Positions 2,150 to 36,101 of a DNA stretch of 56,703 nt are shown piece after piece. Every line of letters begins with the position of its first letter. The stretch's first letter is position 1. The stretch is from Convolutriloba macropyga (taxonomy: Eukaryota), in contig NW_027453125.1 of the NCBI RefSeq assembly GCF_964194025.1, forward strand, positions 1 through 56,703. The letters are read 5' to 3'. The position numbers and the translations under genes were made by a program. The notes under the pieces were generated by a model. That model was not told the origin of the DNA and made no database searches. It saw only the letters and a list, made by a program, of their open reading frames with translations.

Positions 2150-2707
2150 GTGTGGGAGTTTGCGCGATGTCGCCTGAAGGTCGATGCACAGGCGCAATAT
2201 CGCCGGAAAGTTTTCAAAGCCGACCACTCGGTCAAAGTTGTCAAGCGCCTCCGTCCTACGGATACAGAGCTCCCAGAGAAGGTGCTGCAAAATCTGCAAC
2301 ATTACCGGGTTCACACATCTCACTGTGCAGAGGCTGACCTCGAAACGGGCTTTGGGAAGCCTAGCATCAAAGGGGACGCTCTCGCTTTGCCGATGGATTC
2401 TCACAATCGCCTGCCCTCCCCTCACGCGTCAACAACAAGTACTCGACACCCTCCGCTGCGCAACCTAGACGTCCCCCTGCGACAATAGCTCCTACCCCTC
2501 GGCCTGCGGCCTTCACGTCTCTTGAGCTCTACAGCAGCGCCCCGTGGAGCAAGGCCAGCTGTTGTTGTTCGTCGAGTGCTGGGAGATGTCACCAACACTT
2601 GTGCTGGCTCTTCCCCACCTCTTCCAGCCAAAAAAAGGAAAACATTAGACCTTCAACTTCGAAAATCCGTCGCCCTTGCTCTCTCCCCTCGTCAGCACAA
2701 CAGCTGA
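2150..2707 (+). pseudogene. Decayed ORF of unknown function (one in-frame TAG at 2486-2488)
   Basis: ORFs 2150-2488 and 2522-2707 share a frame. They contain RRVLGDVTN and PAKKRK and are followed by an (AAT)n tract. Confidence 0.3.
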
Positions 2708-2886
2708 TCCAATCTCCCAGCCGCAGCGAAGCCCGAATACCCCAAGCCCTTAAACCCCAAAACCCTACAAGGATGCACTACCTCGTCCCAGTTCCGCGGC
2801 ATGCCGGGAAGAAGTATTCTATTCTTAATCTTTTTCACCCTTGGGAGAAGGTGGGTCGAAAAACCCCTGCCCCACTCTTTAACTTC

Positions 2887-2919
<33 letters not shown>
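2887..2919 (+). repeat. (AAT)n microsatellite immediately 5' of the TSD
   Basis: About 10 AAT units. Confidence 0.9.
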
Positions 2920-2921
<2 letters not shown>

Positions 2922-2940
2922 GTAATAATTAAAAATCGGA
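2920..2940 (+). repeat. Target-site duplication, left copy (right copy 5917-5937)
   Basis: Exact 21-bp direct repeat bounding the retroelement. Confidence 0.95.
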
Positions 2941-5916
2941 AACATAAAGGCCTGGGGGACCCTAGGAGTGGGGCCCTAATCAACACAGTGCGTCTCATCT
3001 GCTATCTGCATGCCTCCCAAAGCGACGGGGTTCGGTACATCATCGAAAATGTCCCGGGCACAGAGAAACACCCGGAGATTGCTAGAATGCTGGGGGCCCC
3101 TGTAAAGCTGGATGCCCCCCCCTGTGGGTCAGCGGCGCGTAGACAGACGCTGTTCTGGCAGAACCTGGCCCCCGTCGAGGAAATACAATCTAAGTTCGGG
3201 GCCCTCCCGCCCCCGTCCCAAACAGTGAATGGTGCCCTGAAACGGGCAGGGCTGCATACCTGGCGGTCCCAACCCCAGGAGTTGGGCGTGACCTGCTTCC
3301 CTGGGGACCCCTACAATCTCCCGGGCCTCCCTCAGCGAGCCATTCCCAAGATGGTCTGCTTCAAGGGCTCCCATGCGTTCCGGTTTAAAAGAGTCCGGGG
3401 GAGGATGCTCCCCGGCCCTGGCATGCTTTACAAGGGCAATGAACTGACGGAACCTGACGCCGAAGTGGCCGAGGCCCTGATGGGATTTGAGCAAGGGGAT
3501 ACGGCGGCGCCGGGCCTCCTGCCTGGGCAACGGCGCCACCTGCTGGGCCAGTGCATTGACATTAACTTATTCTCGTGGTTAATTGCCACGGCCTCCCCCC
3601 GCACGGAGCTGCACCCGCCACCCCCCTGGCCCCGAGCACGGCACGCAGTCCCAGAGGAGGGAGTCAGGCTGTGGCAGGTCTCTGAGGCACAACGGGCGGC
3701 ACGCTGGCTGGGGGACCCCCTCCCTTGGGACTGCATGGCCCCCCTGTCGGATGCACCAGGTCTAGTACCGAGTCCACCCCTGGAGGATGCGACGAGGGCG
3801 CTAGTTGTCCCTCCGCTCCGCCGGCACCTTGCTCATGACCCACGGGCCTGGGTGTACACGGACGGCTCTAGAAGTGAGGCTTCCTCTACACTGGGGGCTG
3901 CCGTTGTGCACCTAGAGACCAACACCTTCGTTAGGCTGGCATGTACGGGGAAAGAGGAATGTAACACAGTGTTTAGGGCGGAGCTCGTGGGCATCCACGA
4001 GGCTATCTGTCATTTTAGTGAACGTGAGAGATTGTATGTCCTGAGTGACTGTGCCTCGGCGATACAGGCGGTGGACGCCGCCGTCCGCCGCCCGCACGAG
4101 CGGGGCTACCACCACCACAGGCCCCTGCTTCACGCCATAGCCCAGGGGATCCTAGAGAGGGACCGCTCAGGGAAACACACGGTCATACATAAGGTCAGAG
4201 CTCATGTGGGCATAGAAGGGAATGAGCTTGCAGATTGGCATGCTAAGTTTGCGGCGAAGCATCCGCTGGGTACGGAGGATTTCCCTGTGAAGGCACACAC
4301 CCTGGGGGCTGCGCCGGCCCGGCCCTGTTACTGGCTGTTCTATGAGCCGGGTGTACCGTCCCCCCAAACAGCAGACTCTGCGGGGAAAGCCCCCGCAGCT
4401 CGGGAAGGGCCTAGGAAGAGAAAACTTGGCCATCTGCAGAAGGGACCTGATGTAAGCCCTGACCCCACAAGCCCCCCCCCACCCCCTGCAACGGATGCTC
4501 GGCCTTCGGCCTCGCAGGAAAATAAAGGGGGGGAGCCAGATGTACCCGCTGGCCAGCCCGGACAAGAATGTGGGGAGAAGGAGCCCGTTAGACATGCCTT
4601 TACTGACCCGCAGAAGCATATCAGAACTCGGGTGCGGCCCAGGGTGTTAGAGATGACGGCCTGCAACTCCCTCTACAGGAGACTGATTATGGCTGCCAAA
4701 CAGAGGGGGGACCAAATTGAGGAAACTGCGGCTGGCCTGGCTAAGCTGCATAGAGAGGGTAGGCACAGGGATGCCACCAGAATCTTTAAGTTCCTGTGGG
4801 GGCAATACTACAATGGCAAGCTGGCGAGACGCTACGGCCACGCCACGCATGACAAGTGCCCCCTCTGCAGCCTACCGGACTCGTGCACTCACATAGGGGC
4901 GGGGTGCCCGGCCCTTGCCCCCCACTACCTCCTCCGCCACCAAGCGGCTGTACAGGCTGTACATGTGTTTATCCGTCAGAGCGAGAAGGGGGCGGGGGCT
5001 ATCCTGGGTAACCCCCTGACCTTGGTTGCCTGTGATGGGGGCGGGGAGGCTGCAGCTAGCAAGGACCCCACACTCCGAACCCTGGCCGGCCTGGAGGCAC
5101 ATGCTACGAGCAGACAAGGACCCCCCAGAGACTCAGACCCCAGCCTTTGCCTGAAAGAATGTATACATGCACCGAAGTACCTGCCTGAGTGGGTCCTGCC
5201 CAAAGCAGTACACGACCGCCTGTTAGCCGAGGGGGCCGGACTGGCCCCGGACATTGTGTATGCTCGGGGAGTACCCAACCTCTGCCCCCCCCCACCCAAC
5301 TCATTTAACCCGTGCCATTGCAGCCTGCTGCTGGTGGAAGTTGGGTACTGCCAGGACCTGCGTCTAGACAGCAAAGAACAGATGAAGCTGGGCAAATACG
5401 ACTCGCTTGTCACGGCCCTACGGGAGAGGTGGGGCAGGGTCACTCTAGTTGGGATTCCCCTAGGGATTGGTGGGACTGTGTCGAGCTCCACCGCCCAAGA
5501 ACTCGCATTAGCCCTCTGTCTCAAGCGACCTAACCTACAGTCAGCACACCGTAGCACAACCGAGGCAACCCATGGCGCAGACAAATCCGAAGACGAGGCA
5601 GGGGAGGTGGACGCTAGGGCGCTGCGGGCTACGAGGAAGGCGTTGAAGAGTCTCGCCAAGACGCTTCGGAGCCTGGCGCAAGCACACCTTCTGCACATCA
5701 TGAAGGCGAGAGTATGTAAAATGCTGGATGAAGAGAAACCTACCAGGGGTGGCGACGCTGGGGCCCCGAGTGTGATCAAATAACCTGGTGGGGGGCAGTT
5801 CCCTAGCCAGGCTGCTCCCCCCCTCTCTACTCTCAGGCTACTAGGCCCCCGGCGCTTGGCGCTGGAGTGCTGATGTCTATATGTATCCTTACAGTGTAAG
5901 GCAGTCCTCCTCCTCC
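2941..5916 (+). mobile_element. 5'-truncated non-LTR retrotransposon (RLE-type, Dualen/RandI-like) carrying a cytosine DNA methyltransferase domain
   Basis: Identical 21-bp flanks TAGTAATAATTAAAAATCGGA at 2920-2940 and 5917-5937. Short 3' UTR ending in (TCC)4. The ORF is open from the left junction and encodes RNase H, a zinc knuckle and an RLE. Confidence 0.9.
2943..5783 (+). CDS. Retrotransposon polyprotein, N-terminally truncated: DNMT (motifs V-X) - RNase H - CCHC zinc knuckle - restriction-like endonuclease
   Basis: In frame from 2943: HKGLGDPRSGAL..YIIENV (3045), PVKLDAPPCGSAARRQTLFWQNL, EALMGF..RRHLLGQCID. RNase H: VYTDGS (3852)..AELVGI..SDC..KVRAHVGIEGNELAD. Knuckle: CPLC..HIGAGC (4857). 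RLE: RH..PDIV (5247)..LVEVG..KLGKYD. Confidence 0.88.
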   Translation, partial: HKGLGDPRSGALINTVRLICYLHASQSDGVRYIIENVPGTEKHPEIARMLGAPVKLDAPPCGSAARRQTLFWQNLAPVEEIQSKFGALPPPSQTVNGALKRAGLHTWRSQPQELGVTCFPGDPYNLPGLPQRAIPKMVCFKGSHAFRFKRVRGRMLPGPGMLYKGNELTEPDAEVAEALMGFEQGDTAAPGLLPGQRRHLLGQCIDINLFSWLIATASPRTELHPPPPWPRARHAVPEEGVRLWQVSEAQRAARWLGDPLPWDCMAPLSDAPGLVPSPPLEDATRALVVPPLRRHLAHDPRAWVYTDGSRSEASSTLGAAVVHLETNTFVRLACTGKEECNTVFRAELVGIHEAICHFSERERLYVLSDCASAIQAVDAAVRRPHERGYHHHRPLLHAIAQGILERDRSGKHTVIHKVRAHVGIEGNELADWHAKFAAKHPLGTEDFPVKAHTLGAAPARPCYWLFYEPGVPSPQTADSAGKAPAAREGPRKRKLGHLQKGPDVSPDPTSPPPPPATDARPSASQENKGGEPDVPAGQPGQECGEKEPVRHAFTDPQKHIRTRVRPRVLEMTACNSLYRRLIMAAKQRGDQIEETAAGLAKLHREGRHRDATRIFKFLWGQYYNGKLARRYGHATHDKCPLCSLPDSCTHIGAGCPALAPHYLLRHQAAVQAVHVFIRQSEKGAGAILGNPLTLVACDGGGEAAASKDPTLRTLAGLEAHATSRQGPPRDSDPSLCLKECIHAPKYLPEWVLPKAVHDRLLAEGAGLAPDIVYARGVPNLCPPPPNSFNPCHCSLLLVEVGYCQDLRLDSKEQMKLGKYDSLVTALRERWGRVTLVGIPLGIGGTVSSSTAQELALALCLKRPNLQSAHRSTTEATHGADKSEDEAGEVDARALRATRKALKSLAKTLRSLAQAHLLHIMKARVCKMLDEEKPTRGGDAGAPSVIK

Positions 5917-6983
5917 TAGTAATAATTAAAAATCGGACACAGACTACAAGTACCTACCAACCTCAAATCTGATGCTGGTCAAAAATAAGGATGGGCCGAT
6001 GGTTCCAAATGACATATTGCAGTAAAAATATTGACACGCACCTGATCGAACTGACACGAATAAAAAAATCCCACTGGCGACTGGATCTCCATATAATAAA
6101 GGAACGTAGATAGAATCTACGTAGAATATTGCAGGATCGAATGATGATAATTGATAAAAATGATAACATTTAGATGATTCACAAATCACATGCACCCAGC
6201 ACAGTGCAGGCGGCAGCAGCACCTCTGTACTCCTCTCTCTAGCGAGTCAGAACAAGAAGTCAGAACTCGGAAATCAGCTGTCACCTCGACGTTCTGTATT
6301 ATTATAATACTAGTATACATGCCACATGTGTGCCATGGGATGTGCCGTGTTCGCCTGGTACGGTATGGTAGGTACAGCCGTACCTACTCTAGAGAGCTAC
6401 AAGCTACAGCCCGTGCTTCCTTCTGCTCGTACGTACCCTACCCTAGGGTAACGTACTCGTACAGTATTAGAGAGAGGCTTTTGCCTTTTTTTCTCCGGCC
6501 GGCCCGGGAGAAGGTAGGTAGGTATCCTTACCTACCTAGGTCGAGTAACAAAAAAATCGAGATTCGATCTAGTCTCGAAGACCAGGCTCCGCAGGGAGGT
6601 ATTTCGCAGTCCGCTGTGTAATTACGAATATGTCACGATAGTACACCACATGACGGAATAATATTTGCATTCTGCGTAGTACACATGTACTCATGGTCAC
6701 AGATTTGTTCCTCCCGCTGTTTCGTCTGCAAACCGTTTACTGTTCGGAAAAGTCCGTGCTACATCTACGTATTCTACGTTCAACGGGCACCCCAGAAATT
6801 CGATATTTGAATTCCGCACGAATTCCTTAGAATTTGCACGAACGTTTTCACATTCAGACATAGACAGTATAGTGGTTACATGACATGTAATATAAACAAT
6901 GTACATACTACTACTATATTATTGGAACAGACACGGGGAGGGGCCCAAGGGGGAGGTTTCCGACTCCGAGGGGTTTCCCCTCG

Positions 6984-33596: not shown

Positions 33597-36101
33597 TCAG
33601 TGTGCTGTGGGAGGGTCTATCCGTGCTTGGCTCGGTCGGCTGTTGGGTGGGTTAGCCGGTGCAGTCGGGCTGTGGCCGGTAACTGGCGCCGCAGTGCCGT
33701 TGGCAGCAAAATCCTCGAAGCTCTCGAGGTATTCGGGGGTGCCGAAGGCGCTGGGTGGTGTGTCATTGTGGATGACGCCCTCTTCTGCCGGGCTGAGCTT
33801 TCGGAGTGGGAAGCTGCGCATCACTGCCATGGCCACCACGGCAGCAATCCCGCTTGCAGAGATGACCGCCAGCTTGGCGGCGTTCATGGCATCAGGCGAG
33901 TGGGCCATGGCGAGAGCTATGAGGAACAGGCACATGGTGAAGCCAATGCCTCCCAGCAGCCCGAGCACCACCAGGTGCTTGGTGGTCATGCTCTTGGGCA
34001 TCTTGGCAATGCCAGACTTGACCGCAAGGACGCTAAAGGCGGTGATCCCCAATGGCTTCCCCAGCAGCAGGCCAGCCAAAATCCCCACGGAAACCGGCTG
34101 TGACATCAGCCCACCCAGCATGGACAGGTCGATTTGCACCGCGGTGTTGGCGAGCGCAAACAGCGGCATGATCAGCAATGCGGTCCAGGGCACCATCTTG
34201 TAGATGAGATGGTCCATGAGCGTGGGGGAGTGGCCGTGCTCCAGCGGCACTGCCTTGCTGGTGTGGGGGGCCTTTGAGGCAGCGGGGATGGCAAGCGCCG
34301 TGATCACCCCAGCAACGTCAGCGTTGACCCCCCCAACCAACAAGCAGTACCACAGCGCCACCCCGGCGGCGCCGTACATGGCGAGGTGCAGCTGCTTCCA
34401 CGGCAGGCGCTCGATAGCAAAGAGACTCACACTCACGGCGGCGGCAGCAGCGAGGAATGGCGCGTTTATCTTCGTGGCGAAGAACAGAGCAATGACAAGG
34501 ATTGCGCCCTGAAAAGCCAAGCCAGAACAGTGCGGCAGAGAATTTGTCAGCTGGGAGGGGAACATGGATCAGGCCCGCAGATTTCAGACCAGGTCCGCCT
34601 TTCGTGGAGCGAGAGAGAAATGGGTTAGCGCGGTGCGCATTGCGAGGCGAAAGAGAGGAGCTGTGGCCTGTCCGCAGCGGAGAGCGGCTCTGTGCTGTGG
34701 GCTGGAAGCGGCACCGATGTCATGGCGCAACAGGGGTGCGTGGACCCGGTGTATGGGATGGGGCTGGGGGGCAGCGCTTCGCACCAGGTCATCCACGGTG
34801 GCGAGAGTGAGGAGGAAGGCCGATGAGCTCCTTGGCATCCGCCTGTTGAAGAACCCAAAGATGCCCATCGCGAACGCAATATCGGTCGCCATGGGGATGG
34901 CCCATCCGGACATGGCGCCGCCCGAGCCAGCGTTGAGGGCGACATACATGCAGATAGGGACAACCATACCCCCCAGGGCTGCAGCGCAAGGCAGAATCGA
35001 TTGTTTGATGGAGGCCAGGTGCCCAAACACACACTCCCGCTTGATCTCAAGCCCGACGGCAAAGAAGAATAGCGCCATCAGGCCCTCATTCACCCAGGCC
35101 TGCAGGGTTAGCTGGTGCCCGCCCAAGGGGGGCCCGATTGGCGTGTCCCAGAGCCCAATCCAGCTGGGCCCCATGCCAGTGTTGGCGAGGATGATAGACA
35201 GTGCCGTTGCTGCCAGGAGCACAATGCTTCCAAGCCCTTCCTCGAGTGCCTGCAGGCCATCGAGACATCAGCATATCATGCTGGACGTAGTCAGTGCGTG
35301 GGGCAGCAAATGGCAGCTAAGGGGGGGGGGGGGGGGAGGGAGCCCAGGGAAGGGGACGTCTAGGTGAGGGAAGCAACAGTGCGAAGCCCGAGTGGCTAGT
35401 GGCGTCAGCAGAGGTAGCTGACAAGGGTGGGGGGCAGGGAGGCAGGGGCCGTATGGACGGGGACAAGCGAGGCTAGGGCCGCAGTACGTGCCCAAGGCCA
35501 GGGCCTCTGAGCGGAAATGGGAGTGGGTACGGCAAGGCTCCCCAGTGAGGAAGGTGGAAAGGGAAAGGGTTAGAGGGAGAGGGAAAGGTAGAGGGAGCGA
35601 CCCCTTCTCGAGCAGGATGTATGGGACAAGTTAGTGACCAGGGCAGCTATGTATTCAGCTCATTGCCAGTAGGGTACACAACAGCAGGTTGAGGAACAGA
35701 GGAGCAACGCCCCTCTGCTCCAGGCCACCCCTCGGGTTTGTTACCTTGTGCAGCGGCGATAGCGTGTTGTTAGTCGGTGCCTCCAGCACCACAATTCCCG
35801 ATGGTTCTGGCACAGGTGCCGCTATCGAGTGGCACCGCACGGTGCGGTGCCTCGGCCGCAGCAAAGACGAGGGTCTGCAAGCGGTGGAGCGGCACCTGCG
35901 GAGTGAGGAGGCGAGGGTGGGGCAGGCAGAGGGGGTCCGCTGCTCCGAAGATACCCGCGGTTGTCCGGCCCGTGAGTATCCTGTACTCGGCTGCTGCGAT
36001 TTCACCCTAATGACGCCATGACTGCGGGGCGTCCTCGCCACAGAAAGGTTGCGGCGTTGGGCTGTTCCCACACCGTTGAAGGCCGCCGTGGGGGCAGCCA
36101 T
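33597..36101 (-). CDS. nhaA: NhaA-type Na+/H+ antiporter with putative plastid transit peptide; exons 36101-35745, 35249-34785, 34508-33597 (~577 aa)
   Basis: WVNEGLMALFFFAVGLEIKRE, GWAIPMATDIAFA, LATVDDLGAI, PLFALAN, GKPLGI, GIGFTM. Both introns are phase-0 GT-AG. N-terminus is Ser/Arg-rich. Confidence 0.93.

Follow-up and report, generated by a model that had tools for sequence, protein, structure and literature searches.

The stretch of DNA analysed here, 56,703 nt in its whole length and hereafter called the window, is contig NW_027453125.1 of the Convolutriloba macropyga assembly GCF_964194025.1 (C4029 in the 1.18-Gb assembly that we refer to as G000). Near its left end, at 2941-5916, lies an insert of 2,976 bp that is bounded by a direct repeat and carries one long open reading frame (ORF). 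We interpret this insert with high confidence as a dead, recent, 5'-truncated product of target-primed reverse transcription (TPRT), derived from a giant non-LTR (long terminal repeat) retrotransposon, or long interspersed nuclear element (LINE), that carries a C5 DNA methyltransferase (DNMT). Two further copies, referred to as C1707 and C142 after the contigs that hold them, occur in the same assembly. The features of the locus, in window coordinates, are as follows.

2920..2940, + strand: left target-site duplication, 21 bp; its last base, A, is shared with the full-length copy
2941..5916, + strand: 5'-truncated LINE copy, 2,976 bp; 98.3% identical to C1707:4258-7227 (minus strand)
2940..3590, + strand: remnant of the C-terminal part of the C5-DNMT, region of motifs VI-X; motifs I-IV missing
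3045-3053, + strand: DNMT motif VI, ENV, by motif reading
3129-3158, + strand: DNMT motif VIII region, by motif reading
3477-3500, + strand: DNMT motif IX region, by motif reading
3546-3572, + strand: DNMT motif X-like, GQCIDINLF, by motif reading
3849..4256, + strand: RNase H domain, PF00075, E 4e-12
4857..4907, + strand: CCHC-type zinc knuckle, CxxC...DSCTHxGxGC, nearly invariant among relatives 35-55% identical
5247..5474, + strand: probable PD-(D/E)XK nuclease core, with a modelled fold resembling the R2 restriction-like endonuclease (RLE) and other PD-(D/E)XK nucleases
5247, + strand: PDIV of the nuclease core, conserved motif
within 5325-5363, + strand: EVG(Y/F)CxDLR block of the nuclease core, conserved motif
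5385 onward, + strand: conserved Lys of the nuclease core, conserved motif
5781..5783, + strand: stop codon of the ORF
5784..5904, + strand: 3' untranslated region (UTR), with an 11-bp hairpin near its start (~5790-5820)
5905..5916, + strand: (TCC)4 3' tail; (TCC)5 in C1707 and (TCC)3 in C142
5917..5937, + strand: right target-site duplication, 21 bp, same as the left

Positions 2920-2940 and 5917-5937 agree at 21 of 21 bases, and this is the sole such repeat within 2500-6400; by our own estimate, the chance expectation for two equal 21-mers in approximately 4 kb is ~2e-6. The repeat search over the same interval found no long terminal repeats around the insert. The insert has a GC content of 0.61 vs ~0.53 in the flanks, and the (TCC)4 tail directly abuts the right repeat. 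Alignment with C1707 shows that homology spans window 2940 to 5916/5917, which are the exact inner edges of the repeat; the target-site duplication (TSD) expected of a TPRT product thus lies, without a mismatch, at the limits of homology. At the 5' junction the microhomology is 1 nt, the A at 2940 that is common to target and element. The preliminary description of this DNA had called attention to the perfect duplication, the (TCC)4 tail and an ORF open from the left junction, and all three are confirmed in the sequence.

The frame that bears the RNase H domain is open from 2919, runs through the left repeat and ends at the stop codon at 5781-5783, so that the window ORF comprises 947 codons without a stop. 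A Pfam search with this ORF returns RNase_H only and does not call the DNMT; motifs VI, VIII, IX and X are readable by eye in its N-terminal 200 residues. The window copy lacks motif I, which binds S-adenosylmethionine (SAM), and motif IV, with the catalytic Cys of the PC dipeptide, both of which are present in C1707. Indeed, the whole of DNMT motifs I-IV is missing from it, as are the reverse transcriptase (RT) and the apurinic/apyrimidinic endonuclease (APE) domain. This copy can neither methylate nor move, because it lacks the half of the enzyme with the SAM-binding site and the catalytic Cys, the RT, the APE and a promoter. The earlier view of it as catalytically dead and RT-less is borne out by these absences.

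The assembly was searched with the 3' 500 bp of the insert, with both flanks, and with the 5' 600 bp of the full-length copy. The last 500 bp matched two further copies, C1707 (99% identical) and C142 (67%). Across window 2940-5916, C1707 is 98.3% identical to the window copy, and it continues in frame on the 5' side of the window junction, reading ...DLVIAGPPCQPYSTAG-KHKGLGDP.... At this point C1707 reads GPPCQPYSTAG and then KHKGLG, where KHK is the first codon triplet retained in the window copy. The truncation point consequently lies 8 codons downstream of the motif IV catalytic Cys (GPPCQP in C1707); motif I of the same protein reads ELCAGIATG. A longer copy elsewhere and a junction a few codons past motif IV had both been predicted from the window alone, and C1707 supplies the one and fixes the other. 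Its ORF runs for 3,815 codons without interruption (C1707:4390-15834, minus strand). An independent public assembly, in ENA, has a nearly identical protein, with 2 of 3,794 residues different, and the long ORF is therefore not an assembly accident. The DNMT stands in frame within the mobile unit of the full-length copy; it is an integral part of that unit and moved with the element, as had been proposed.

The three copies differ in their tails ((TCC)4 in the window, (TCC)5 in C1707 and (TCC)3 in C142), and their flanks are unrelated. They also differ in length: 2.98 kb in the window, ~15.5 kb for C1707, and at least into the RT for C142, which is an old, decayed copy that has stops and retains pieces of the RT at its 67% identity. 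In C1707, the 12 bases directly after the tail recur once, 15.5 kb upstream, and form a candidate 12-bp TSD; by our own estimate, the chance of such a recurrence at the exact offset is ~5e-4. We therefore take the C1707 element to be ~15.5 kb long. A family in which all copies begin at one 5' base had been named as the result that would speak against truncation, and the lengths above show that this is not so: no other copy in the assembly starts at the base equivalent to the window's. The common 3' end, together with the differing 5' ends, tail lengths, and flanks or duplications, therefore points to TPRT with 5' truncation, in line with the outcome that the preliminary description expected of a genome search with the 3' 500 bp.

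The C142 copy also hosts an insertion of another type. A Copia-type LTR retrotransposon is nested in it, at 1026-6100 of L006 (C142:9000-18999), with a 1,369-aa (amino acid) Gag-PR-INT-RT-RNH ORF and repeated ends near L006 1026 and 6054. It sits between the PHD and PCIF1 regions of the LINE copy.

The giant ORF of C1707 encodes, in order, an endonuclease/exonuclease/phosphatase (EEP) or APE-like endonuclease, a non-LTR RT, a PHD, a PCIF1-like domain, the C5-DNMT, RNase H, a CCHC knuckle and a probable R2-like PD-(D/E)XK nuclease. The Pfam matches on this protein, which is read from the minus strand of C1707, are listed by ORF residue.

894-1132: Exo_endo_phos (weak), E 0.0021
1530-1752: RVT_1, E 6.5e-27
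2475-2616: PCIF1_WW, E 1e-12
2848-2913: DNA_methylase (PF00145), motifs IV-VI, E 5e-9
downstream of the DNMT: RNase_H, E 5e-12

Within this ORF the DNMT follows the RT at a distance of ~1,100 residues, and the order RT, PHD, PCIF1, DNMT, RNase H recurs in a relative that is ~40% identical. Relatives reach 4,900-5,300 aa. Among solved structures, the RT is nearest by sequence to R2 (9e-25) and L1 ORF2p (4e-21). The PCIF1-like domain aligns with the catalytic region of human PCIF1, with NPEY in place of NPPF. When the APE-like region is excised, Exo_endo_phos matches at 8e-5 across the whole Pfam profile, and its ...ET.., GGDFQ and DHH motifs are invariant in four 30%-identical relatives. A sequence-only search of the PDB with this region gave no match, but the fold comparison did: the model, of low overall confidence with a core predicted local distance difference test (pLDDT) score of 65-87, matches the EEP nucleases TDP2, Nocturnin and ExoIII (Foldseek E 5e-7 to 3e-6).

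The C-terminal region has neither a Pfam match nor a PDB match by sequence. It contains the nearly invariant CxxC...DSCTHxGxGC knuckle, followed by a block of the form PD(I/L)V ... (I/V)EVG(F/Y)CxDLR ... K ... K. The pLDDT of its model is 75-92 over the nuclease core. The top three Foldseek matches of this model are R2 proteins, with E 6e-3 to 3e-2 and probability 0.96-1.0. With VIA-align 2, the zinc-knuckle-plus-RLE regions of R2 align over the greatest length (166-176 residues, at 18-20% identity and Z 6.1-7.1), and the remaining high-ranking rows are all PD-(D/E)XK nucleases. We grade the assignment as a restriction-like nuclease as probable rather than proven because these structural scores are middling.

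At its N-terminus (L008), the C1707 ORF carries tandem domains of ~250 residues, at 82-361 and 399-629, that are 26% identical to each other and share an H...D...C pattern; the domain is conserved in the relatives. This duplicated domain is possibly a cysteine protease, as in Dualen, judging by its residue pattern; no C48-type peptidase is matched by Pfam in the ORF even at E 10. Upstream of the giant ORF, inside the 15.5-kb element and likewise on the minus strand of C1707, are two ORFs of 933 aa (L005 5716-8517) and 226 aa (L005 8533-9213). Neither has a Pfam match, and they are candidates for an ORF1-like role.

The mechanism suggested by the structure of the window copy is that of ordinary TPRT. 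One of the two endonucleases of the element would nick the bottom strand where the 21-bp site begins on the left, immediately past (AAT)10. Pairing of the exposed 3' end with the (UCC)n terminus of the RNA is probable, since the base directly after the tail is T in all three copies and the next completes TA in two of the three. Reverse transcription from the 3' end of the RNA would then have halted or switched template after 2,976 nt, 8 codons past the catalytic Cys of the DNMT; the end of the cDNA would have been joined through the 1-nt microhomology; and a cut in the top strand 21 bp downstream would yield the duplication. The 3' UTR begins with an 11-bp GC-rich hairpin (window 5790-5820) that is present also in the 67%-identical C142 copy, where it differs at one pair, G-U to A-U, among the three sequences compared. 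This conserved hairpin is a possible recognition element for the RT.

Public reads from one study, with two samples, hold the locus in four runs, as de Bruijn contigs only, and both window-type and C1707-type sequence variants are present in them. They bear on the alternative that survives best, although we judge it very improbable, namely an assembly artefact in which C4029 joins a collapsed repeat to unrelated flanks. The surroundings of the left junction would permit such an error: a 30-bp (AAT)n tract and a very high-copy repeat immediately precede it, contigs cover the left flank about half as deeply as the right, and no public contig bridges 2876-2939, a break caused by the (AAT)n tract. 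A false join, however, would not place the same 21 bp, without a mismatch, on either side of the insert; the right junction, with tail, duplication and flank, is contained in contigs of three of the four runs, starting at 5889; and the letters of the window variant are found in the reads at a depth near that of the left flank.

Less credible still is a full-length insertion that was shortened later by an internal or flanking deletion, or a segment that was copied by duplication at the DNA level, even though the truncation and the 98.3% identity are compatible with later events of this kind. Had the 5' 12.5 kb been deleted, the left TSD would be gone or out of place, whereas a perfect 21-bp TSD abuts the truncated end with 1 nt of microhomology. 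Segmental duplication is contradicted because the flanks of the window and C1707 loci are unrelated. A non-autonomous, RT-less element with a fixed 5' end at 2941, mobilised in trans, would have the clean ends and the open frame but is hardly tenable, as C1707 stays in frame across the corresponding position, in the middle of its DNMT domain, no other copy begins there, and such a start would be without promoter or initiator and would halve a domain.

Several observations weigh against a truncated TPRT insertion of a giant DNMT-carrying LINE. The assembly contains three copies of the subfamily, so the nested truncations rest on n = 3, and the 5' end of the full-length element rests on one 12-bp repeat that no second full-length copy confirms. 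The structural scores of the restriction-like nuclease are middling, at Foldseek E 6e-3 and Z ~7, and its model has a mean pLDDT of 58. No empty allele is found in the assembly, where the right flank is unique and the left flank matched only a 50-bp high-copy repeat. Nor do the contigs of the four runs contain a 2940>5938 joint, but de Bruijn contigs are interrupted by the (AAT)n tract and lose rare variants, and they cannot show absence. Two joints that do occur, 2833>6697 and 2856>6706, lie on the high-copy repeat and do not represent empty sites.

The read contigs contain two further features of the locus. A 16.3-kb contig in X1 carries the window variant with 2 differences, yet has 13.4 kb more upstream; a graph chimera would account for it, as would a third copy that is full-length and of the window type. 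The left flank (1900-2860) has about half the depth of the right (5889-6900) in three runs, at 18.3/31.2, 12/27.9 and 5.3/11.9, and window-type variant letters are seen at a depth of ~13 where C1707-type letters are at ~26. These depths may reflect a heterozygous insertion haplotype or a duplicated right flank.

Comparison of the window copy with C1707 gives 47 substitutions, of which 35 are transitions (9 of these at CpG), and one 3-bp indel. By the Nei-Gojobori method, the synonymous divergence (dS) is 0.041 and the nonsynonymous divergence (dN) 0.0078, for a dN/dS of 0.19 (p = 3e-8 against neutrality). Most of the 1.6% divergence is synonymous and therefore arose in replicating lineages under selection, not through decay after insertion. 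C1707 is accordingly a sister lineage rather than the direct parent of the window copy, because most of the divergence arose while both lineages were under selection. The earlier description of the insertion as young stands qualitatively: the identical 21-bp duplications and the lack of a stop in 947 unselected codons fit a recent event. The observed/expected ratio of CpG is 0.57 in the window copy and 0.49 in C1707, vs 0.8-0.9 in the flanks, a depletion that is compatible with methylation of the element lineage.

LINEs of the Dualen/RandI group are defined by two nucleases, one APE-like and one restriction-like, together with RNase H and a CCHC knuckle. The element described here likewise has one giant ORF with the APE-like domain before the RT, and RNase H, the CCHC knuckle and the restriction-like endonuclease after it. 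Both endonucleases are thus found in one element, with moderate scores for the RLE, and RNase H and CCHC lie between the RT and the RLE. An accessory domain of methyltransferase type inside the polyprotein is a further likeness. Giant Dualen versions with an accessory SET methyltransferase domain have been reported from cryptophytes, among them Dualen-1_GCr, which in its 5,287 aa unites a SET methyltransferase and a C48 peptidase with APE, RT, RNase H, CCHC and RLE domains (Lescot et al. 2016, PMC5029228). The present element differs in that a PHD, a PCIF1-like domain and a C5-DNMT, not SET, stand between the RT and RNase H, and in that Pfam detects no C48 peptidase but only the duplicated N-terminal domain with its H/D/C pattern is seen. 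By domain layout, its architecture is best described as Dualen/RandI-like.

Retroelements with a DNMT have been described before, as SymbioLINE-Dnmt, SymbioDIRS-Dnmt3 and KnitGypsy-Dnmt3 (de Mendoza et al. 2018, PMC5890265). SymbioLINE-Dnmt of Symbiodinium has the DNMT in ORF1, upstream of a separate APE-RT ORF2, with TSDs and no poly-A (PMC5890265). Our element resembles it as a LINE that has a C5-DNMT, target-site duplications and conserved UTRs, lacks poly-A and is CpG-depleted. In contrast, its DNMT is downstream of the RT in the same ORF, beside a PCIF1-like domain, RNase H and a second nuclease, an arrangement that none of the three elements named above has. A dinoflagellate host, as for SymbioLINE-Dnmt, is not indicated, since neither the window nor any other part of the 1.18-Gb assembly contains the dinoflagellate spliced-leader (DinoSL) 21-mer, with up to one mismatch allowed. 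In the literature searched, coverage of which was incomplete, we found no description of a LINE with PCIF1 plus DNMT downstream of the RT.

The window copy resembles 5'-truncated L1 and other LINE insertions in its TSD, the 3' end common to the copies, the variable 5' end, the short 5' microhomology and its dead-on-arrival state. It differs in having a (TCC)n microsatellite tail instead of poly-A, and the duplication is 21 bp here and 12 bp at the other copy. With R2 and RLE-type elements it shares the C-terminal CCHC knuckle and the PD-(D/E)XK nuclease, which give the best and longest structural matches, and an RT that is nearest to R2 among solved structures. R2 is without APE, RNase H and methyltransferases and is site-specific for rDNA. 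The present element, by contrast, has all three kinds of domain, and the AT-rich sites of its three insertions are unrelated to one another.

As transposon biology the truncated copy is ordinary, and so is the mechanism that formed it. Its insertion hallmarks show that a methyltransferase-bearing unit moves as one RNA-derived piece and has done so recently, and the TSD hallmarks together with the dN/dS of 0.19 show at least two lineages replicating under selection. The truncated copy also led to the intact copy of ~15.5 kb with its dual endonucleases, PHD, PCIF1-like domain and C5-DNMT. To our knowledge, the only LINEs with a DNMT described to date are those of Symbiodinium, which have it in ORF1. 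Finding a second, independent DNMT layout on a Dualen-like backbone makes it more credible that retrotransposons have captured nucleic-acid methylases repeatedly, and the intact and dead copies are a tractable pair for testing the roles of the methylases. As a tentative proposal, which we consider unlikely, the element would represent a recently active Dualen-type lineage, hitherto undescribed in the literature searched, that has two methyltransferases between the RT and RNase H, one PCIF1-like (cap-adenosine N6-type) and one a C5-DNMT, and maybe marks its own RNA and/or its new cDNA in cis during TPRT. If true, such self-marking would explain the element-specific CpG depletion (0.49-0.57 vs 0.8-0.9) and the purifying selection on the methylase domains.

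The methylase-LINE family is found on 21 contigs, all of them small (~10 kb to >130 kb where known), with a GC of 0.51-0.55 in the sampled flanks (window and C1707). The chromosome-scale contigs contain none of it; they carry a different LINE with an 1,181-aa ORF, at a GC of ~0.46 at two loci. The restriction of the family to small contigs of different GC suggests that they belong to a second organism or to a separate genomic compartment. A source among dinoflagellates or green algae was considered and found no support: the whole assembly lacks not only DinoSL but also PsbO and the chlorophyll a/b-binding protein family, and the PsbO search matched the control genome, Synechococcus elongatus.

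Upstream of the insertion, the window holds several repeats. A degenerate CCCTAAA-like (TTTAGGG-type telomere) motif is present at 2740-2770, and in all four runs a contig extends leftwards from 2759 into ...CCTAAACCCCTAAACCCTA. At 2831-2880 there is a 50-bp sequence, starting with a T-run, that has at least 44 copies, all on small contigs, and a summed contig depth of ~5,400 vs 18 for the flank. In L018 and L019, a ~65-bp unit lies between 11-bp direct repeats and is found in both orientations; the sequence probably forms the end of a very abundant miniature inverted-repeat transposable element (MITE)-like or other repeat. The (AAT)10 tract follows it at 2887-2916, with the LINE insertion point just after. 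Farther along the window are two ORFs, at 33600-34565 (- strand) and 42385-43524 (+ strand); one strongly matches an NhaA-type Na+/H+ antiporter (PF06965, 1.4e-54) and the other weakly the 2B domain of Pif1 helicase, which may reflect a Helitron.

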